Shown one piece after another: positions 13,665 through 27,914 of a DNA stretch of 64,000 bases. The notes below the pieces were generated by a model. It was not told the origin of the DNA. It did not search any database and saw nothing but the letters and a program-made list of their open reading frames with translations. The translations under genes and the position numbers were made by a program. This DNA comes from Salpingoeca rosetta (lineage: Eukaryota > Protista > Choanoflagellata). The DNA is taken from assembly GCA_033442325.1 (NCBI GenBank), contig JAWQFM010000003.1, positions 823,119 to 887,118 on the forward strand. The letters are read 5' to 3'. Each line of letters starts with the position of its first letter. The stretch's first letter is position 1.

Positions 13665-16021
13665 CTATTCAGCGTCAGAGTCCGCGCCACCCTTGGCCCG
13701 TTTCTGCGCGCTCAACCCATGCCCATCATCGCCGCCTGCAACACGTTTCTTGCTTCGTTTGTGCTTCTTCTTTCTCTTCTTCCGTTTCTTCGTGCTCGTC
13801 GTCGCTTCCTCACCGTGATCCCTTGCTTCACCAGCTGCCGCCACGGCCACCTGCCGCTCCGACACTGCGCCTTCTTCTTCCACTTCCTCGTGGTCATCCA
13901 AAATCGGCTCCCGCACTGAGTCGCTTGCATCGGGTGTCGCCACCGCAGGCATCACATCATCATCGCTGGCAAGCGGCTTGTCTTTCCTGTGCTTCTTGTT
14001 CTTCCTCTTCTTCCTTGTCTTCTTTCTTCCCTTCTCCGTCTTGCCGGATTCTGATGCCTCTGCACCATCTCCAGACCCATCGGCATCCGGGGCCACCGCC
14101 GCCTCAATCACGACATCTTCGCCAGCCTCTTGTGCCGCCTGCGCTGTGTCGTCGCTATCGCTGTCGACGAGCTTGCGGCGCTTGCTGCGGTGCTTCGCCT
14201 TGTTCTTTCTTCTCTTCTTTGACGGGGAGCCTGCACTGCCAGGTTGCTGCACGTCGACTTCGCTGTGCGCTATGCCGGCTTGGTCGGGCGAACTCTGTGC
14301 TGGTTGCGCCGCTTCAGCAACACCCACATCATCATCATTATCATCATCACCACTACCACCACCAGCACCAGCTCTAGTATTGCTGGCACCGTGTTCCTTG
14401 TCCTGCTTCTTGTGCTTTTTCTTCCTGTGCTTCTTCTTGGTGCGTGTGGGAGCTGAGGCGGAACCATCATCGCTTACACGGGCCACCGCATCGTGCCCTT
14501 CTTGGGCCAGCTCTTTGTCGCCGATTTGCTGCGGCGATGATCGCTCATGTGCAGCGGAGGCGTCGGCGGGGGCAACAGTCACGGGTGTCGGCGTGGACAG
14601 CAGAACAGAGTCAGCGTCTGATGCCTGGGCCTGGGAGGTTGACGAATGGCGCTTCTCCGCACTCCCATGAGAACTGGCAGGCACGGCCAACACTGACTGT
14701 GCACGAACTCCACTTGTGGACGCGGTGTCAGAGCCAGCTGCGCTGGCATGCTCATCATCGGTTTCCTCTTCCTCAACAATCTCGTACTCGACATCATCCT
14801 GATCTGAGGCAGCCTCAAAATCTTCATCCACCTCCACTTCTTCCACGACAACTTCCTCGTCAGAGAGGCCATCGGAATCCTGAACAGAGGCATCCCATTC
14901 TTCCTCTTCTTGGTCTTCGTCCTCGTCCACTGCTTCCTCTGCATCATAGGCCTCCCAGTCCTCTTCCATGTCCTCTTTTCCACTGTCCTCCTCCTCCTCT
15001 ACATATTCTTCCTCTTCCTCTTCTCCCATTTGTTCTTCTTCTTCTTCCTCCTCCTCTTCCTCTGCATCATCTGCCTCATGATCATGGGCTTCGATGTCAT
15101 CTTCGTCGCCGTCAGAGTCGCTGCTTTCGTCTCCCGCACCTTCGTTGTCGCTATCTTCGTCCTCCGAGTCACTCAGCACCAGATCATTCAGTGTCACATC
15201 CTATCAAGTCAACAACCGAGCACGGCGTGTTTGCGTGATCAGAACACGACAATTACGCAAGCGCATGCAACTGCGGCAAGCACGTGGGCATGTGGGCAAC
15301 CAGGTTTGTGTCTCACCTCCAGCCGGGGTTGAATGATGGCCAGGCGCTCTTGAAACGGCAATGACTGAATTTGGATGGGCAGCCGTCCAAGCCGCCGGGA
15401 CACGTGTTTCTGCACCAACGGTCAATGTAGGGTGTGTGGGAGTCGCGGACACGTTGCACGTGGTTTGTGAGGAGGAAACCCACACTGAGATCAACAGCAC
15501 AGGCCATTCCATCTGGCACTGCACACATGAATTGATAATCACGCTCGCTCGCTCGCACACATGCACACATACACACATACACATTCACACATACACACAT
15601 GCACATGTTCATCCACACACATGTACACGCACACATGCGCACGATTGGGGCAGACCTTGAGAAAATTAGGAGAATACTCCAACTGGAGTTTCTGCTTGAC
15701 GGCAGCCCAGTCCACGTGCTCAAGGGACGAAGCACCCATCTTTTGCACGGCAGACACAACTGCGCGGTGAGTGGCACGACTCATCCGTAAATTGGTGCTC
15801 GTCGTCTTGGCTTTCTTCCTGCGCAATTTCGGTTGGGCCTTAGACGGACGCAAACAGCCCAGGTCTCGAGGCAATGGAATGCTGTCGCCGTACGTTGATG
15901 GCACCGCCACTTCCAGGTGTTTCTGCATGCAGACGAACGAATTCAAGTGCGTGTGTGTGTGCGAGGGTACATGTGCGCGTTCGTAAGCAAGAGTGTGTAG
16001 TTGTGTGTGTGTGTGAGAACA

Positions 16022-16082
<61 letters not shown>

Positions 16083-16573
16083 GGTGGTGGTGGTGTTGTT
16101 GTTGTTGGTGGTGGTGGTGAGCATGATACAATCGGGGGCGATTGTGAAGACCTCACAACACCTCGCGTTCAAGTGATGGCATACGCGCATGCGCACTCAG
16201 TTTCAAACCTTGAGGAGGCTTGTGGGGACACATGTATGCATCTTCTCCTGGACGATGTCCCAGTTGATGTCCGAAAGGTTTGAGTAGTCGAGCTCCGCTA
16301 ACACACGCAGCAGGCGCTTGTACAGGCTTGGTCGGATGAGATGAGACGCCTTCTGTGCGGAAAGCACCCCCTGAAGCATGGCCTCAAAGGTGGGGAGTTC
16401 AGAGAACGGCCTCAGCGCCTTCAAGAATCGCGCCTGTTGCCGCATGACACAACCAAGCAAGGCCAAACGCGGTTAAATCCATGACTTGCGGGCATGGTCG
16501 AAACAAACTTCATGAGCACGTGTGCAAGTGCCCAAACTCACATGTGTACATGCATCTTTGAGCTTTTGTGTGC

Positions 16574-16619
<46 letters not shown>

Positions 16620-19589
16620 ATGCGTGCATGTGTCGGTGAGAAACAGACAAATACAACACAGCACCAAGGCACCTTCAAGACGGTCGGGGTGAAATCAAAG
16701 CCGACGTGTTCATGGATGTCCTCCCAGTCCACCTCCTCCAGCGACTTGTACCCGAAATCACGAATGAAGTGGGCAACGGCACGTTGTTGATCTCCACGCA
16801 GTGCGTGACTTGGCAACAGCTTCTGCAGTTGTTCTTGGAACGACAGCGACTGGTGGCCATCATTGTCACCCTGCAGAAGTTGCTTCACGTGTGCCTATGC
16901 AAAAAACCACGCCAGCAAATCCAGGAGCACAGTGCAGCGTGAGTTGATGGGCGGTGCTTCCACGCATATTTGAGAGCAGAAGGCAGCGACCCACTCAACT
17001 GCCTGGGCAATCCACAAACGCAACCAACCAATCCAAACACAGAGCGATTCACATGCGCGCGTCAGCAAAACAGGGGGCACACCTCGATTGTTTCTGGCGC
17101 TCGGAAGACGCCAGAGGCTTCTTGCACAACGCTCCAATCAACCTCGTCCACTGACGAATACCCAAGCTCTTGCAGCGAGAAAATGATGTCCGTTTTCTCC
17201 CGGCGGTGCAGGTGGGAAGACAAGGCCAGCAGCAATTTCAACTTGTCTCGAAAGGACAACGATGTCGACTCGGCAGGAAGCTCTCCAAGTTGTTCCTTGA
17301 GTGCTTCCTGTTAGACGCGAGCAGAGCCCGTGCATCAAAGGCGAGCGTGCGTTATGGCAGCGTGAGTGACACCAAAGGCACGAGTGACAGAGTGATTGTG
17401 CATGTGCGTGCATGGTGTGCGCATGTGTGTGTGCGTGGGTGCATGTGTACGTGTGTACGTTTGTGAATCTGATACGTGTACACAACACGACAAGTACACA
17501 CACACACACTCACACACAAGCACACTCACACACAAGCACACAGACAACAACGAGAAGCGACAATGCACTATGACACGAACTAACTCATGGACAAAGACAA
17601 GGGGACGGGGCAGAGCGTCAGGAGAGGCTACAGCAAGTACAATGCATATCGCAAAGGAAGATCATTTCCTCGCACCTTCAGCCTGTCGGCAGGAGTTGCA
17701 TGTGAGGCTGACGCTGCCTTCCAGTCCACTTGCTCAAGCGAAGTGATACCCGAACTGTAGATGACACGAGTGACTTGGGACAGAACCAAGGGGTGCACAG
17801 CCGACATAATCTTGGGCAACAGCTCGGCAAGCGGACGATCGATCAAGTTGGGAGTCAAACGCTTCACGTGCGTCATCATCAGCTTCTGAACAGAAGGAAC
17901 AACATGTGGAGACATGAGATGTTGTCAACAGAGGAATGCTGGGGAGTGCTGTAGTTGCTGGAGAGGAAAGAGGAAGCGGTGCACGCTAATGCATTTGCAG
18001 CAGGTGACAGCAGCAGCAACAGCAGGCAGGCAGGCAGGCAGCAGCGCACACCTTCAGACTGCTTGGACGATGAGGCAGCTGAAGCCGAGTGACAACTTCC
18101 GCCCAGTCCACCTCGTGCAAGAATGAGCAATCCATGTCCTTGATTGTCTCCCAAACACGTTGTCTCTCCTGCGGCGTGAGTGGACGGTGCGAGTACAGCG
18201 AGTACAACGCTGCTAGCTGACCAGCAAATGACAAAACCCGCTGCTTTTGGGGCAGTGTAGCCAATTGCTGGCGAATGTAGTGCTGTACCACGGGCAAAAT
18301 CGAGGGTGATGCTGGCCGTGAGTCAAACATGGGCCAGCGCACACGTTGGCGCCACACAACAAGGGCTTCAAAGAATGTCTTCCCACAAGCGCACACAAGC
18401 GCGCACAAGCGCACCCCTCCACTTCGCACAAGTAGCACACAACAGCGCACAAGCGAAGGCAGAACAGTACATACCTTGAGGAATTCAGCAGGAAAAGGCA
18501 GCTTCACGTCACGCTCAACTTGGTGCCAATCAATGTCATCCAAAGACGAGGGCGCTCGACGGCGAAGTAATCTCAATAGTTTCAGGTGTGCCCACGGCAC
18601 CAATCGAGATGTGGGCAGCGACCAGCACGCCAAGCATTGAAGTTTCGTGTTGCAAGGGAGTACCTGCAACCTGAGCGGAAGTTCGCTAAACTCGGATGCA
18701 AACGACGCCTGTCAAAATGCAATGCAACAAAAGGTAAGGGGTAAAGGTAAGCCTGGAGGGAAAATAAAAGTGCACTGATTCGGGCACGGGTTGCAAGCCC
18801 ACGCGAAACAAACAACAAACAGAGCAACCAACGCTGCAAAGATGGAATCCGAGCAGGAAGGCGCGAGACAAGACGAGCATTACCTTCAAGTGTTCAGGCT
18901 CAACATCCACGCCGCTTTGCTCCTTCACAGCAGTCCAGTCAATCGCTTCAAGAGACTCAGCATCCATGCCTTGCAGCACCTTGAACGCTGCCCTGCGTTG
19001 CACCTGCGTCACTGTTCGCGTGCGCTGTTCCCTCTGTGTCCCTGAGGCTACCTTCAACACTGCGAGTTGGTCTTGGAATGGCAGCAGCCGCTGCTCGGGT
19101 GGCAAGACAGCAAGCTTGCTCGCGAAATAGTCCTGCGTGCAAACAAGCACAAGTACATGCGGCGAGTGGGACCACAAGGTGCATCATAAAGATGAGCACA
19201 ACGACTGCGTCCTTCCTGACGCGTAACGCACGTTTGCGCGCATGACACAGGCGCATGCAACGTGCAACGTGCAACGTCACAGCACGCAAACAAAGCAATA
19301 GGCGCAAGTTCACAGCCAAACAGTCGCTCACCCTCAGGCGTTCAGGCTCAACATCCGCGCCACTTTGCTCCTTCACAGCTTCCCAGTCCACTGCTTCCAA
19401 CGACGCAGCACCAAGCTCCTCAATCGCAGCTATGCAGCGGGAACGTGTCGACGACAGCCGCAGCGTACTCGCCGCTAGCACTCTCAATCGCTCTAGCTGC
19501 TGCTCAAGTGGCTCAGACTGTGCCTCAGCCGGCAGCGCACTCAGGGCATGCGTCATTCGAGCCTGCGCCCACAACCCATCGCGCAGTGT

Positions 19590-19623
<34 letters not shown>

Positions 19624-22600
19624 GCACGCACACACGCACACACACACACACGCACGCACGCACACACACACACACACACAAACAACAACAGCGTTGTGAG
19701 TCGTCGCGAAAGTGCAATCTCAACGCAAGTGATGCATGTCAAGCAAACAAAGCGTGCGACATCTCTCACTCTCAAACAAAACGGCGCAACGCTGCAGGCA
19801 CATGATCATTGTCCCTGTAGAGCCCAAACCTTGATGTTTCTCGCAGTGGATGCGCTTGTCCCAATGCGTTGTTGCACCTCGTCCCAATCAACCTCGTCCA
19901 GCGATGACACACCCATGTCCGCAATGACCGCAAGAGCCTTCCGAAGATGCACTGGCGCTACATTTTTCACCAGTGATCGAGCCATCACCCACTGCAGCTG
20001 CTGCCTGAACGGTAGTCTGCGAGCTCTGCCTGGGAAGTACCGCAGCACAATCTTCTACAAACCGCACCAGCACACCACACACACACACACACACACAGAG
20101 CACACACGCACACACGCACAAACACACACAGAGCACACACACACACACACACACGCACAGAGCACACGCAGAGCACACGCATGCACATGTGAGCAGCGTC
20201 ATAGAAACAAGTGGCATCACCATTCATACACAGAGCACACACACCCACACAGGACAAACAAACAAAAGCACATCTAGAAGACAACAGCAACAGCTCTGTC
20301 AGCACAACAACACTACCTTCAGGCGTTCAGGCTCAACATCCACGCCGCTTTGCTCCTTCACAGCAGCCCAGTCAATCGCTTCAAAGGACTCAGCATCCAT
20401 GCCTTGCAGCACCTTGAACGCCGCCCAGCGCACCTGCGCCTGTGTTCGTTTCCGTCTGTGTTTCTTCGAGACAACGGTTGAGCCTGCGCGCAACACTGCG
20501 AGTTGGTCTTGAAATGGCAGCTGCTGCTGCTCGGGCGGCAAGACAGCAAGCTTGCTCGCGAAATAGTCCTGCGTGCAAACAAGCACAAGTACATGCGGCG
20601 AGTGGGACCACAAGGTGCATCATAAAGATGAGCACAACGACTGCATCCTTCCTGACGCGTAACGCACGTTTGCGCGCATGACACAAACGCATGCAACGTG
20701 CAACGTGCAACGTCACACCACACCAAACAAAGCAATAGGCGCAAGTTCACAGCCAAACAGTCGCTCACCCTCAGGCGTTCAGGCTCAACATCCGCGCCGC
20801 TTCGCTCCTTCACAGCTGCCCAGTCCACTGCTTCCAAAGACTCAACGTCCAAGCCTTTCAGAGCGCGAAGCACAATGGCCTGTCGCCGTTTGTTCAGACC
20901 GTGCCCTTTGAGAATTGCCTTCGATGTCAGCAATTCAAGTTGATCTTGAAGCGGCAGCTGTTGTTGCTCTGACGAGAGCTTGGACAGTTGCTGATCCAGA
21001 AACCTCTGTGTGAGAGCGCGTGCGTACGCGTGCGGTGTGTGTGAGTGCGGTGTAGCGTGAGAGAGAGCGCGTGCGTACGCGTGCGGTGTGTGTGAGTGCG
21101 GTGTAGCGTGTGTGAGAGCGCGTGTGTACGTGTGCGGTGTAGCGTGAGAGAGAGAGAGAGAGTGTGTGTGTGTGTGTGTGCATGCGTTTGCCGCACCCGA
21201 ATGGAACCCGGTTTCGTTAGGAGTGGGTACAGCTGGCAAGGAAATGAAACAACATGTTGTCCATCATCAATCGTTCACGCGCACTTCCTGCCATGAACAC
21301 GTACATGACGAACCTTAACATGACCCGTGTTTATCGTCATTTGACAGCGCTGCTGAACGGCGGACCAGTTGATGTCATCGAGCGAAGTCACGTTCATGTC
21401 GTGTAGCGCCATCATGCCAATGCACACATGCCACTCAGGTGGGCGCGCATCATCAATCGCTTGCTGCAACTGCTGCTCAAAGGACAAGGTCTGTTCCTGG
21501 GAAGAAGCTTTGCTAAGGGCTGTTTCCACAGCAATCTGCGCATCGCATATGAACAGCAAGGGGCAGGACAGGGTGAAACTGTGAACCCGGTTGGCTCGAC
21601 GCCTGCACATAGACTCCCCGGCCCCCGCCCCAATACAACAACCTCATCTTGCAATGCACACCTTGAGGCTGAGACAGCTTCGCTTGGAACCACTGCGCTC
21701 TTTGATCTCATCCCAGTTCACGTCCTCCAATGACGCAACATTCATTGCTTGGACGCGCTGGCATATTGACACCACTTCTGCGGGCTGAGGTGGTCCGAGG
21801 GAGAGCGAGGTCAAGACGGCGCTGGTTGGTTGGTCCCGTTCCTCCCTGGGAATCTTGAGAAGCAAGGTTCGAAAGCGAAACTACAATACCACGCGACAGG
21901 ACATGAAATGCAGGCGCGCACAGTGTGAACATGTAAAAACAGTGCTACGTTGTCAGAGCAAGGAATCCCGGCGGCTGCCACTTAACGGGACACGCATCAC
22001 TCAACACAATGCAGTAGTGCACTCGCTCACTTGAGCACGCGTGTGCCGCTGCAAACAGCCCAAATACACTTCACAAACCATGGTACGGCTGTATGCATAT
22101 CGCAAAACGCAACACAGCACACTACAACGCAGGCGCAAATGCACACAACTCGGACCTCAAGTAGCTCTGGAGGTGTGTTCCCGGGCAGCTGTTGTGCGAT
22201 CGCATCCCAGTCAATGTCACTGATATGTTGCGTGCCCTGGTCTCGGATCACTGAAAAGATATGTCTCCAGGGCAAGGTTTGCTTCAGCATGTCTTTCACG
22301 GCTTGCAACTGCTCTGTAAACGATTGCGTGTCCGTGGAAACCAGGGACAGGTAGCGCCCCATGTGCTTCTGCACGGTCGAAGCGAAGGCAGTGGTCAGGG
22401 CAAGGATGCGGTTTGCGAGTGGCGAGAAGAGATGCACAAAATCGATGGCATTGTGTGTGTGTGTGTGAGATGACCAAACAGTGAGGTACTCTCCAGCAAG
22501 CAGTGAGGGGAGGAGGAGGTCAGGATTGAATGCACACGCACACGCACGCACACGCACGCACACGCACACACACACACGCATGCACGCACACGCACACACA

Positions 22601-23736
22601 CGCACACACGCACACGCACACACACACGCACGCACACACGCACACACACACGCACGCACACACGCACGCACGCACGCACGCACGCACGCATTCACACACG
22701 CACGCAGGTGTGCGCATACCTTAAGGTCAGCTGGTGAGTCACCACATTTGACGTGGTCGAAGACAGCATTCCAGTCCACGTCGTCGAAGCGGGCGCAGCC
22801 CATGCCTTGAATGGCTGCAATGACGGCAAAATTGTCTCGTCGACGCAGATACCCGAGCGAACCTGGTGCTTCCCCTCCCCGCTTCTTCCGCGCTTGCACC
22901 TCCGCCATTTTGAGCTGGGCCTTTTTGCGCTCTGCCTCAAGCTGTTCCCTCAGCTGCTCCTGCTTCAGCAATTCGGGTGGCAGCGTGCCGGCCTTGCGCA
23001 TCTCGCTCAGCTTCTTTCGTCTGTGCTCTTGGGCCTCTGCTGTCTTGGGCTTCTTCTTGCGGGTGACTGTCGGCCGTGCTGCCTTTGAGGGACGCTTTGC
23101 TTGGCCTTTGGCGCTGGCAGTGTCCTTCGACTGGGGTCGCTTCAACAGATATTCGATGTGATGCTTGCAATGGCTTGGGCTCTTCTTGTCGAAGTGCTGC
23201 GCGAGCAAAACCCACTTGCGCCCGTGCTTGGCATAGAGCTCCATGAGTTTTGCGTCCTCCTCCTCCGTGAACGGGGTTGTGATTTGGGTCATCCTTTGGT
23301 AACAGCTCATGAGAGAGTTTGGGTCACGTCCAAGTGAGGATGCGATTTTCGCCCATGCTTTACCGTGGGTTTGGACCAAGCGGCACAGCTGCGCTTCCTC
23401 CTCAGGGGTGAGGGGTTTATCCCGCAACAGAGGGTATTTGGGGTACGCCCTGGTGAGGTATCTGCAGATGGAGACCGCAGTGCGGCGAATGTTGTGACAC
23501 ACTGCTCGGCGGAGCTCTGACTTGAGCTCTTGCTGGTCACCGTAGAGTACGCTCAACGCGTCGCTGGCGCCATGCTCCTTCAGGAATCGGTTGACGTTGT
23601 TGTGCAGCGTTTCCACCTCGCTCTTCGACCAGGGGCCTTTGTTGGGTTTGATCCGCTCGAGCTCTTTCCGGTTCTCTGGCGTTGGCCTCCAGATGTGGTG
23701 GAGTATCGCCAAATCTTCCTCCTCCTGCGTTTGCAT
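13665..23736 (-). CDS. Reb1/TTF1/DMTF1-family Myb DNA-binding protein with 16 tandem exon-encoded 'DW' Myb-like modules and an acidic plus Lys-rich tail (about 2035 aa)
   Basis: Exons: 23736-22720, 22368-22156, 21880-21662, 21535-21314, 21005-20769, 20568-20317, 20054-19830, 19562-19332, 19132-18884, 18708-18475, 18282-18052, 17885-17676, 17307-17083, 16894-16673, 16433-16209, 15922-15656, 15409-15317, 15200-13665. All introns are GT-AG, all exon lengths are multiples of 3, and there are no stops. The N-terminus has [20 protein letters not shown] (Myb-associated domain) and two Myb repeats ([29 protein letters not shown]; [27 protein letters not shown]). The start codon is uncertain and an upstream exon is possible. 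Confidence 0.85.
18880..19400. repeat. Intragenic duplicated block, copy A (3' end of exon 8, intron 8, exon 9)
   Basis: Near-identical to 20315-20838, including the ~200-bp intron (e.g. GCGTGCAAACAAGCACAAGTACATGCGGCGAGTGGGACCACAAGGTGCATCATAAAGATGAGCACAACGACTGC in both copies). Confidence 0.95.
20315..20838. repeat. Intragenic duplicated block, copy B (3' end of exon 5, intron 5, exon 6)
   Basis: Near-identical to 18880-19400; ORFs 18686..19177 and 20299..20613 begin with the same peptide. Confidence 0.95.
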
Positions 23737-23859
23737 CCTCCTCGTGGGTGCACCACCAGAGAAGAGCAGGTGGTTGGTTTTTGTGTGTGTTCGAATGTGT
23801 GTGGTACACAGCGGTCGCATGTCACTACATTATATGGTGTTGTGAAGTTGTCTGTGTGT

Positions 23860-24007
<148 letters not shown>

Positions 24008-24355
24008 GTGGGTGTGTCACACACTTACGCACATGCACTCACACGGACTCACATTCTCTGTCTGACACCACCCGACGTTGGTTCATCCAATCATCATCAC
24101 GTCAATCGACAGCGAGGCACATCAACAACAAGACAAGCAGTGGGGACGAAGAAACGAACAACATGGGTGCTTGCGACAGTTAAAATCAAGGGAGATGGCA
24201 TGACACAAAGGACATGTGCCAAACACAACGTGGCGAGTCGTGCGGAGTGAATGCGCGTGTGGCACCAACAGCGCCGCATCCATGTGCACGTCTCAAAAAC
24301 ACGAGCGCACGCACACACACGCACGCACACGCACGCATGTATCAACAACAGCACG

Positions 24356-24587
24356 CTAGAGGTTGAGCATGCCCTTGACGGTGCGGACAACGTTGCTTGC
24401 GTTGGGGAAGACGAGGTCCTCCAGGTTCTTCGCATACGGCGTGGGCACATCCGCACCGGTCACGCGGTGCACTGGCGCATCGAGATGGTCAAACGCCTCG
24501 GCTGTGCAATGTGCATGTGTGTGTGTGTGTGTGAATGTGTGGGTGTGTTGTGTTGATGCGTGTGAAATGCGTGGAATGCGTGTGCGA

Positions 24588-24623
<36 letters not shown>

Positions 24624-25220
24624 GTGCGTGGAATGCGTGTGCGAATGTGTGTGTGTGTGTGAGTGTGAACGAGGTTGCGGTGAAGCGTAGAAGGTTCAAC
24701 ACATGAGTTCAACACATGATTTGAACGGCACGTGACAGATCAACAGGGCAGGCGTACATTCCATGACGACGGCACAAATCTCCGAGCCAATGCCGCACTG
24801 TGGCCAGCCGCCCTCGACGGTCACCAGCCTGCAGGGTGCACACATGCCAACAAGCAGGGATACGAAACAGCGGGAGGAGTTGAGCAGGTGGCGGATGTGT
24901 GCTGCAAGGCAATCGTATCATGTCATGCAACAAACACACGAGCGCATGAGCGAAACCCGCGGGCGGTCAAGCCATCGCGACTGACCTGTTTGTCTTCTTG
25001 ACGGAGTTGATGATGGTCTCCGTGTCGAGAGGACGCAGTGTACGCAGGTTCACCACCTGCATTCGGCATCAAAAGCAACCACGCAGGAAAACGAATGAGC
25101 ATATGGGAGGGGGGCGTACACACACACACACACAGGAGAGAGACAGGCAGACAGAGACAGAGACAGAGACAGACAGACAGAGACAGAGACAGCCAAAGAG
25201 AGACACACAGAGAGTGTGTA

Positions 25221-25252
<32 letters not shown>

Positions 25253-26840
25253 TCTCTTCGAGTGCGCCAAACAACAAAGGCTAGAAGCAAAACCGCTTGC
25301 TTGTCAAAACAAAATGGTTCACGCCACAAGCACGATACAAACGCAAGCGGTCGGCGTACCTCACAGCTGATGCCCTCGTTCTCAAGCTCCTTTGCGGCCT
25401 CGACAGCAAAGCCGACAGCAATCGAGTGCGCAACAAGCGTCACATCCGTGCCTGGTGCACATGCAGCATGCACGGGAAATGTAGAGAGGCAATCGCATGC
25501 AATGAATGGGCGCCCGTGCACAGGCACAAAGTGATATCAGCACGAAGCAGCGCGGACCACGAATTACATGAATCAGAGACGGCACATGCACAGTGAGCCA
25601 CTCAGAGAGTGTTTGCAAATGCATACATCAATAGAGCATCAGCCACGCGCAGCAAACGCACAGATGCACAGACGCACAGGCGCACAGACGCACAGACGAG
25701 CTGATGGCACGCACCTTCGCGCTCAATCTTTGCCTTGCCAATGGGGAGAATAAAGTCCTCAGCAAGAGCCTCGTCAGACATCTCAAACTCCTGGCCGTAC
25801 ATGAGCTCGTTCTCAAGGCACACGACGGGGTTCGGGTCTGCGATGGCGGCCTTCAGCAGGCCCTTGCAGTCCTCAGAGGACCAGGGCGCAACAACCTGCA
25901 TGGTGATTGCATGCAAGCACGCATCCACGTCAACAAAGAGCACAAGGCGCACAACGCTGTAGTAGCAAGCAGCCGCACATATATGCACACTCACATGCAC
26001 GCACACGCAAAGGCAAACGCGCACGCGCACACGTTCCTCTGTCACTCTGTCTTTTTCACACACCTAACTTGAGAAACAAGCCAATGCATACGTATTTACA
26101 CAAAAGCACACACACACTCTCACACACACACACACTCTCTCTCTTCCTTACAGCTTGATGTCACTTGCCTTGAGACCGGGGCAGGAGGAGTACCAGGCAG
26201 CAAAGCACTGCGAGTGCTGGGCAGCAACGCCTGTGGACATGCCATTGGGCCCGCGGAACACGATGGGGCACTTCATCTATTGGCGGCAGAGTAACGGTGT
26301 GTTGCGTGGGCATGGCATGTCAGCGGAAAAAAAAACCTTGCAAGCGAAGCGGGCGATTCTAAGCAGGCCATTCTCTTCCACAACAAGCGCATGCGTTTAT
26401 GCTTGTGCATGTGTCTGTCTGCTTGTCTGCGTGCGTGGTCCGTGGTCATGTGCATGTCTGTGCGGGTTGTACAACCACACTCCACGCAAACCATCAAGTT
26501 TGGATGCATGCATGCATGTGCACATCAATACAGTCAGTAGGAAGGCAGAACTACTCACGATGCCGGAGGACATGTAGTGGGCCTTGGCAGCAGAGTTGAC
26601 AATCTACATCATGGCGTAGAAGGTGAATCCCAAAACCAGTGACGTGAGGGTACAAGTGCCAAGTGGTATGGATGATGCAGGAGAATCAAGATGTAACGGA
26701 TACAAGTGACATATAACCAAAACAGGGCGAGAGAGCGCCTGTGTGTCGTGGTGCGTGTGTGTGTGTGTCGTGGTGCGTGCGTGTGTGTGTGTGTGTGTCG
26801 TGGTGTGTGTGTCGTGGTGCGTGTGTGTGTGTCGTGGTGC

Positions 26841-26922
<82 letters not shown>

Positions 26923-26929
26923 CGTGGTG

Positions 26930-26963
<34 letters not shown>

Positions 26964-27914
26964 GATTCAAATGCGCATCTTTGCACGTGTGCACTGAAGT
27001 GTACGTGGACCTTACGTGGTCAATGGCCTGCATGGCAAAGTTGAACGTCATAAACTCGCAGACGGGGCGCAGGCCGCCGAGGCCAGCACCAACAGCAAGG
27101 CCGCCAAAGCCCATCTCAGTGATGGGCGTGTCAATGACGCGCTGCAAAGCAAGAAAGCCCAAGGTGTTGGAGCATTGGTACGTCAGTGGCGCTCATCAAA
27201 AAGGTCGAGAGAAACAAGCGACAAGGCCCATACAAGAGATCGGGCGACTCCACAAAGAACGCATCTGTCCATGCATTGCTTGACATGATTGCATGACAAG
27301 GAAACGAAAACAGGAGGACGCATGGAAAACATATGCGTGCATCAGAAGGCCGTGTATGTCTCTGTCAATGACAGATACGTCAAACAAACCATGGGGGTGT
27401 GGGACCTTGCGGAATGCTTACCTTTTCGCCGTACTTCTCGAGGAGACCCCGAGTGACCTTGTATGCGCCATGGTATTGGCCGACCTCCTCGCCCATGACG
27501 ATGACCTTGTCGTCCTTCTTCATCATCTCGTCCATGGCTGCATTGAGCGCATCGCGCACGGCAACCTGTGCAACACGGGAGAGGCAGCGGGTTTTTTTGA
27601 TTTTCAGAGAGCAGGTGTGAGCATGCGCATGCTTGCATGCTTGAGTGGGTCAGCGCGTTGACGCCAGTGCATGCGCGTTGACAGGCAGACATGCAACCGT
27701 CGACGTCGCTAGACGTCGCCACACACGAAGCATGGGAGCAATGATGAACACGGCAATCACACCGCAGCCGCAGTAGCACTAGTCACAACGAAAACACCGG
27801 CATGCGCTTGAACACCCATACCGTCTGTGCAAGGGCGGGGCGGGCTGTGGCAAAGGTGCGCGCCGAGGTAAGGGCACGGGCAGCACGGCCCGACACAAGA
27901 GCGCTGGCAACCAT
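24356..27914 (-). CDS. PDHB: Pyruvate dehydrogenase E1 beta subunit, mitochondrial
   Basis: Presequence [26 protein letters not shown], then exons encoding [15 protein letters not shown]...[69 protein letters not shown]..., [61 protein letters not shown]...MLNL*. Confidence 0.97.

Follow-up and report, generated by a model that had tools for sequence, protein, structure and literature searches.

Salpingoeca rosetta, a genetically tractable close relative of animals, encodes a 2063-residue protein, PTSG_11868, in which a tandem array of 16 and a half copies of a unit of about 75 residues comes after two canonical Myb repeats, each copy being predicted to adopt a four-helix fold whose best structural counterpart is the terminal domain of Schizosaccharomyces pombe Reb1. 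The gene lies in a 64,000-nucleotide window (assembly GCA_033442325.1, contig JAWQFM010000003.1, positions 823,119 to 887,118 of the forward strand); all coordinates below are positions in this window, and the gene and its parts are on the minus strand. The best explanation for this architecture, to which we assign a probability of roughly 0.45, is a nuclear, DNA-anchored protein whose 16 Reb1-tail-like protein-contact modules would act as a multivalent docking platform. In Reb1/TTF1-type factors, a single, poorly understood C-terminal domain links site-specific DNA binding to chromatin events, fork arrest and termination by RNA polymerase I (Pol I). The 16 diverged paralogues of one fold found here show what is structurally conserved, and the array offers a test case both for a Reb1-type domain as a general protein-docking module and for the effect of multivalency.

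Gene structure and transcript evidence

A motif scan of the minus strand recovered exactly 16 sites of the form [VI][DN]W..[VIA], from 22779 to 15715, each with the pattern h..h..hG..SL upstream of it and, about 20 codons downstream, L[KRE] together with an in-frame AAG|GT-type splice donor. The extended motif h..hG..SLxxVDWxxV....P..LK closes exon 1 and the 15 exons that follow it, all of them consecutive. The gene as spliced, with phase-0 acceptors picked by eye, comprises exon 1, then 15 unit exons (70-89 codons each), a half-unit exon and a tail exon, separated by 17 introns. All 17 introns are GT..AG and phase 0, each exon length is divisible by three, and 16 of the introns share a single position within the unit, straight after the LK of the motif. 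A preliminary description of this DNA, made from its letters alone, had claimed 16 consecutive exons ending in such a motif, with internal exons of 70-89 codons; the motif scan, the donors and the splice model bear out both statements.

Exon 1 (22720-23820) encodes the Myb region followed by a basic linker and then unit 1, whose core (22720-22851) forms its end; it was delineated from the open reading frame (ORF) and the splice model and is identical to the public protein, with the exception of the start discussed below. The exons of unit 2 (22156-22368, 71 codons), unit 3 (21662-21880, 73 codons) and unit 4 (21314-21535, 74 codons) are defined by the splice model and the public protein. The following exons, from the donor of unit 5 onwards, are also joined in RNA: unit 5 (20769-21005, 79 codons), whose 3' part is near-identical to that of unit 8; unit 6 (20317-20568, 84 codons), near-identical to unit 9 save in a linker; unit 7 (19830-20054, 75 codons); unit 8 (19332-19562, 77 codons); unit 9 (18884-19132, 83 codons); unit 10 (18475-18708, 78 codons), the first of those chained by contigs to unit 16; unit 11 (18052-18282, 77 codons); unit 12 (17676-17885, 70 codons), the most divergent of all; unit 13 (17083-17307, 75 codons); unit 14 (16673-16894, 74 codons), for which a structure was modelled; unit 15 (16209-16433, 75 codons); and unit 16 (15656-15922, 89 codons), which contains a long basic linker. 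The half-unit exon (15317-15409, 31 codons), likewise joined in RNA, supplies unit 16 with the end of its third helix and an LPFxxRL helix. The last coding exon (13665-15200), backed by an RNA splice and the public model, encodes an acidic tail of 511 residues and ends in the stop codon at 13665-13667.

The RNA junctions were checked over 15000-20999, using two runs of RNA-seq raw reads and two runs of spliced contigs. Thirteen of the 17 introns, from unit 5 to the exon past the half-unit, were joined in RNA at exactly the predicted bases, so that the proposed joining of these exons in transcripts is directly observed for most of the gene. All the joints are CT..AC on the plus strand, and first mates map to the plus strand, as expected from minus-strand RNA in a stranded library. 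Single intron-free contigs (1680 and 1912 letters) link unit exons 10-16, matching in seven pieces in one run and, in the other, in six among the pieces listed, with unit 12 not among them. The splice 15200|15317 (intron 15201-15316) is supported by 10 raw reads and 2 contigs, and the gene therefore runs on for 511 codons to the stop at 13665. Thus, the half-unit does mark the end of the array, as had been proposed, but not the end of the gene. The remaining four junctions, upstream in units 1-5, agree with the public protein model residue for residue; among them, intron 2 is matched by DNA-type runs and is not among the spliced-contig matches listed, which is consistent with its splicing without proving it.

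The spliced translation is identical to PTSG_11868 from residue 33 to the C-terminus, and all 17 introns therefore agree with the public model. This protein is deposited as a "hypothetical protein" of S. rosetta (EGD81608.1, XP_004996812.1) and as a "Myb-like domain-containing protein" (UniRef100_F2U1V6). Hence, the idea that the gene was hidden from annotation has to be dropped, as the public model already splices it correctly. Two in-frame ATGs are available as starts: that at 23820, from which the first 32 residues of the public model stem, and an alternative at 23736, which would be favoured by one RNA-type contig that, if spliced, would begin near 23811. The first 28 residues of the public model resemble translated CA-rich low-complexity sequence. 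PTSG_11868 is an expressed multi-exon gene of S. rosetta.

Duplication history of the array

The organization of the gene, in which each phase-0 exon carries a single unit and the intron position does not vary, points to growth of the array by tandem duplication of exon-plus-intron blocks. Two blocks stand out: one begins at the tryptophan region of unit 5, spans intron 5 and reaches into unit 6, and the other is its counterpart in units 8-9 (20317-21005 vs 18884-19562). Their sequences agree at 90-100% of positions, and introns 5 and 8 at 194/200, but identity drops to 43-56% over some 50 nucleotides that code for the linker between helices in units 6 and 9. On comparison of the nucleotide sequences, this pattern points to a recent duplication or to mosaic gene conversion, and homogenisation or duplication of the array probably continues. 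With each unit in a phase-0 exon of its own and with such duplication or conversion under way, the gene would be a clean example of repeat proteins growing by exon shuffling.

A joint 20769 to 19132 that would skip units 6-8 in frame was found in contigs and in two raw reads. We rejected it as evidence of exon skipping: over the 31 nucleotides before the junction and the 32 nucleotides after it, the 5/8 and 6/9 copies do not differ, and a unit 5-to-9 joint is therefore indistinguishable from the normal 5-to-6 and 8-to-9 junctions. Real cassette skipping of units 6-8 may occur.

The repeat unit and its predicted fold

An alignment of the 16 units yields the consensus L..LP.....LPF..QL..L ... 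MG..SLE.VDW.AV.E..G....P..LK, in which the tryptophan is invariant. The units are only about 20-30% identical to one another, and all are recognised by a profile built from the others: in a leave-one-out test, from which near-duplicate units were also excluded, each unit scored 18.9-71.7 bits (18.9 for unit 12 and 29.9 for the unit 1 core), against 3.8-11.4 bits for the best of 200 shuffles per unit. The recurring unit of the preliminary description is thus well founded. Its relationship to known families is not apparent from sequence searches. Pfam scans of single units returned scattered chance matches, with no family matched by more than one unit; the best Pfam result was PF22980 (Myb_DNA-bind_8) at 21.5 bits over the whole array, below the 27-bit cut-off, and no Pfam Myb model passes. 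Profile-profile comparison of the unit with the Myb region of the same protein (hhalign) gave a probability of 0.4%, with the tryptophan of the unit aligned to the second tryptophan of the Myb repeat, and an ESM Atlas feature search with a unit recovered no credible family. When the sequences in the Protein Data Bank (PDB) were searched with the unit profile in both exon and domain register, nothing meaningful emerged at expect (E) values up to 10, and 5EYB, the Reb1 entry, was not among the matches; these searches thus gave no link to Reb1 at the level of sequence. The isoelectric points (pI) of the cores set most units apart from the Myb repeats, with 11 of the 16 being acidic or neutral (pI 4.6-6.9 vs 9.25 for the repeats). 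Reading down the alignments, we found the conserved columns to be those of the hydrophobic core and the helix-capping positions, and noted no conserved basic column.

A model of the unit in exon phase, folded from the 16-unit alignment, had a predicted local distance difference test (pLDDT) score of 71; for its last 48 residues the matches, at Z 2.6-4.4, were mostly to Myb, SANT and GARP domains. The hydrophobic spacing around the tryptophan suggested that the third helix runs into the next exon. We aligned 15 overlapping two-unit windows in domain register and folded the first with AlphaFold, obtaining a model with a pLDDT of 90.3 in which a four-helix pattern appears twice. Its helices span residues 4-17, 27-34, 40-53 and 63-70, in the order helix 1, a short turn, the tryptophan-bearing helix 2, helix 3 laid over the splice junction, and helix 4, which corresponds to the LPFxxQLxxL segment. 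In this predicted model the folding unit is offset from the exon, with the intron falling at the start of helix 3. Accordingly modelled, the unit is predicted to be a Myb/SANT-like three-helix core with a helix-turn-helix (HTH), extended by a fourth helix.

We compared this model with 48,161 representative solved chains by exhaustive structural alignment (VIA). The top match was 5EYB chain B, from the S. pombe Reb1-Ter complex, at Z 8.4, with residues 76-149 of the model (74 residues) superposed on Reb1 424-500 at an rmsd (root-mean-square deviation) of 2.3 Å over 72 aligned residues. The next-best chains scored Z 5.9-6.0 or below and were either Myb, SANT and GARP domains, matching the three-helix core only, or four-helix GerE and winged-helix regulators; a VIA re-run on the best 1000 chains of Foldseek gave the same ranking. 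Foldseek itself, run against the PDB, had no match at E up to 1e-3 with either model, and its highest probability, 0.80, fell to 5EYB. An Atlas fold search returned only bacterial HTH regulators, with template modelling (TM) scores below 0.45. The description of the unit as a degenerate Myb/SANT domain is in accord with these results, in that the two-unit model has such a fold and many Myb, SANT and GARP chains match it at Z 5-6. For its description as an amplified terminal Reb1-type module the outcome is divided: the fold supports it, through the match to Reb1 424-500, but a link at the level of sequence is absent. In other words, a C-terminal domain of the Reb1 424-500 type does follow the Myb repeats of PTSG_11868, at the level of fold only.

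The N-terminal Myb region, the linker and the acidic tail

Upstream of the array, two canonical Myb repeats (23137-23421, residues about 134-228; pI 9.25, hence basic) are matched by the Pfam models PF00249 (E 1e-23, in two stretches) and PF13921 (E 2e-18). They are preceded by a putative degenerate first Myb-like segment (KGPWSKSE...RYLTRAY; 23440-23640, residues about 61-127), which we recognised by eye and which no Pfam model matched, Reb1_MybAD included. Against the PDB sequences the repeats score better with MYB21 (E 3e-9) and c-Myb (E 2e-7) than with Reb1 5EYB (E 9.7e-4), where they align to chain positions 150-278, taken from this alignment to be MybR1-R2 of Reb1. The crystallised 5EYB chain presumably begins near residue 146. 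If so, positions 150-278 are Reb1 residues of about 295-423, directly before residue 424, and on this assumed numbering the domain order, Myb repeats and then the four-helix domain, would be the same in PTSG_11868 and in Reb1.

Searches for further signs of a particular Myb family in this region gave little. Reb1_MybAD (PF21559) had no match in the protein at E up to 10 and none in the genome, where the control genomes too were silent in the same search, and a genome search with Myb_DNA-bind_8 gave nothing useful. Relatives of the Myb region were not found at E up to 1e-5, and of two further searches one returned a single weak Logan protein and the other nothing, in part because the full-length protein is masked by an 80-residue representative; a metagenome search found no relative, and an ESM Atlas feature search with the N-terminus found generic Myb families only. 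Thus, the adjacent canonical Myb repeats characteristic of the Reb1/TTF1/Nsi1 type are present, yet they are not specific to that family. The assignment of the protein to the Reb1/TTF1 type in the preliminary description stands in so far as the two repeats align to 5EYB, but as a classification it is weak: c-Myb-type chains score better and Reb1_MybAD is unmatched.

Between the repeats and unit 1 lies a K/R-rich linker of 95 residues (22852-23136, residues 229-323) with a net charge of +16 and a pI of 10.8. The array of 16 units and the half-unit occupies residues 324-1552, and the tail the remaining residues 1553-2063. This tail has a net charge of -82, with 29% D+E, long D/E/S runs such as SDSEDEDSD, and four K/R-rich patches that resemble nuclear or nucleolar targeting signals and may serve as such. 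Its composition is typical of nucleolar or chromatin proteins.

Comparison with known proteins

S. pombe Reb1 shares with PTSG_11868 the succession of two canonical Myb repeats and a four-helix domain of about 75 residues. The two differ in that Reb1 has one such domain against 16 and a half in PTSG_11868, that the unit has no detectable sequence similarity to it, and that the MybAD was not detected in the S. rosetta protein, which in turn has the basic linker before unit 1 and the 511-residue acidic tail after the array. TTF1 and DMTF1, which with yeast Nsi1 and Xenopus Rib2 are Reb1-related Myb-type factors, are alike in the general layout of Myb repeats followed by a C-terminal region; in TTF1 this region is needed for function (PMC11358750, PMC9753541). 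The unit profile had eight matches with an E of 1e-3 or lower in a search of 1.84 billion representative proteins, and neither factor was among them; single-copy domains would fall below the threshold of that search.

With generic Myb/SANT domains (c-Myb R2, TRF1/2, Rap1, the GARP domains of ARR1, LUX and PHR, and the SANT domains of SMRT, MTA1 and Ada2) the unit shares the three-helix arrangement and the invariant central tryptophan, superposing at Z 5-6 with an rmsd of 1.2-3 Å over 45-60 residues. However, it keeps only this one of the three regularly spaced tryptophans of such domains, adds the conserved fourth helix LPFxxQLxxL, has an acidic or neutral core in most copies and reaches the cut-off of no Pfam Myb model. 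The TALE, C2H2 zinc-finger and PUF arrays are likewise built from many small tandem helical modules, and PTSG_11868 is, in addition, modular by exon. In contrast to those arrays, no conserved contact scaffold with variable specificity positions was noted in it, and the charge of most of its units is unfavourable; judged by core pI and conserved columns, the units do not present a conserved surface for contacting nucleic acids.

Phyletic distribution

Searched in six frames with the unit profile, the 55.4-Mb assembly yielded no matches beyond the 16 units, and with the domain-register profile all 30 matches at E up to 5 were inside this gene. In the search of 1.84 billion representative proteins, drawn from a collection that includes NCBI, UniRef and EukProt entries, the only true match among the eight was the gene's own fragment, an 80-residue ORF call of unit 15; the other seven were unrelated repeat proteins and were rejected. 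An array of even a few units would sum to a strong score in this library, the threshold of which single-copy Reb1 and TTF1 domains would not reach. The array therefore appears to be confined to S. rosetta among the sampled proteomes, or to have diverged beyond the reach of HMMER elsewhere. As the preliminary description had supposed, no other family member with this layout came to light, there being no multi-copy relative in the genome or among the representatives. PTSG_11868 itself sits in a 90% cluster represented by the unit 15 fragment, and length-filtered or representative-only searches consequently miss the full-length protein. In the literature searched we found no mention of the locus tag PTSG_11868 and no paper linking S. 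rosetta with Reb1-type Myb proteins. Thus, while the gene model is already public, the architecture appears to be undescribed.

A possible docking platform and the competing explanations

We consider the unit to be probably homologous to the terminal domain of Reb1, because the match spans the whole 74-residue domain, has a Z 2.5 units clear of all other chains and is to a protein in which the same domains come before it. In the explanation that we prefer, the basic N-terminal Myb repeats would anchor the protein at specific DNA sites, and the 16 Reb1-tail-like modules would contact proteins rather than read DNA, together making up a multivalent docking platform by analogy with the contact between Reb1 and the Pol I subunit A12.2. 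We take this contact to be made by the terminal domain of Reb1, the exact limits of which are likewise assumed here. The platform could plausibly be sited at ribosomal DNA (rDNA) or at another nucleolar or chromatin site, given the tail, whose acidic, CK2-site-like stretches and basic patches would fit nucleolar or chromatin residence. A role in protein contact is favoured because 11 of the 16 cores have a pI of 4.6-6.9, no conserved basic column was noted, and one study describes the counterpart in Reb1 as not essential to DNA binding (PMC8970589). According to another, arrest and termination require that Reb1 and A12.2 make protein-protein contacts (PMC8701712).

Several observations pull the other way. 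The Z of 8.4 is in the range where, by the tool's own warning, a common helical arrangement can explain a match; the fold was predicted from an alignment of paralogous units only; and the unit has no sequence-level similarity to Reb1 or to any solved chain. The membership of the N-terminal part in the Reb1/TTF1 group is weak, with c-Myb-type chains outscoring Reb1 and Reb1_MybAD unmatched. Furthermore, units 10 and 16 have a pI of 10.5-11, several inter-unit linkers are strongly basic and many units carry K/R on helix 3; with units 6, 10, 11 and 16 and several linkers basic, part of the array may contact nucleic acids.

The serious rival to the docking platform, although we hold it to be unlikely, is that the units are SANT-like modules that have nothing to do with Pol I termination and bind nucleosomes or histone tails, which with the acidic tail would make the protein a chromatin scaffold or a histone-chaperone-like factor. 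In its favour, the structural searches returned the SANT domains of SMRT, MTA1, CoREST, Ada2, SWIRM/BAF and DMAP1 with Z values of 5-5.6, the modules share an acidic surface with SANT domains, and the long tail is acidic too. Yet these matches span just the three-helix core (45-55 residues), and their Z falls 2.5 units short of that for Reb1 424-500, a match that takes in the fourth helix as well. Somewhat more doubtful is a modular reader of DNA or RNA, akin to the TALE- or zinc-finger-like array of the preliminary description, in which the degenerate Myb units would touch a few bases apiece and the 16 together would read a target that is long or repetitive, for instance a satellite or an rDNA spacer. 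The HTH-type core, like those of the DNA-binding Myb, GARP and TRF domains, would suit such a reader, as would the pI of 9.0 of the whole array, the four basic units and the K/R residues on helix 3 and in the linkers of several units. This reading is disfavoured by the predominance of acidic or neutral cores, by conservation that is limited to hydrophobic-core and helix-capping positions with no conserved basic contact position noted, by a best structural counterpart described as not essential for DNA binding (PMC8970589), and by the failure of every Pfam DNA-binding Myb model to reach its cut-off.

The least probable explanation is that the array is a largely neutral, fast-evolving repeat spacer without unit-specific function, or that the unit count is in part an assembly artefact of near-identical copies. 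It could draw on the restriction of the array to one species in all searches, on the low identity between units alongside recent duplication or conversion, and on contigs that collapse units 5/8 and 6/9. Nevertheless, none of the 16 units has lost its open frame or the core pattern, their fold is predicted with confidence, every junction examined is supported by RNA, with 5-to-6 and 8-to-9 both present in raw reads, and the public assembly yields the identical protein. To return to the docking platform, its boldest form, which we regard as improbable, though less so than a neutral spacer, would be a lineage-specific amplification of a module for docking the polymerase or another partner, in which 16 Reb1 termination-type domains could form, at rDNA terminators or wherever else the Myb repeats bind, a hub of high avidity. 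If true, such a hub could capture many Pol I complexes or nucleate a nucleolar sub-compartment, and, since all units are phase-0 exons, skipping of exons or unequal crossing-over could adjust how many docking sites the protein has.

Introns and flanking sequence

Most introns of the array are filled by CA/GT-rich tracts; intron 15 carries (GTT)n repeats at 15990-16127. Between the 5' end of the gene and its upstream neighbour on the same strand lies a similar microsatellite, (CA)n/(GT)n, some 150 bp long (23860-24010). The exon translations of this neighbour (about 24356-27560), inspected by eye, resemble pyruvate dehydrogenase E1 beta.

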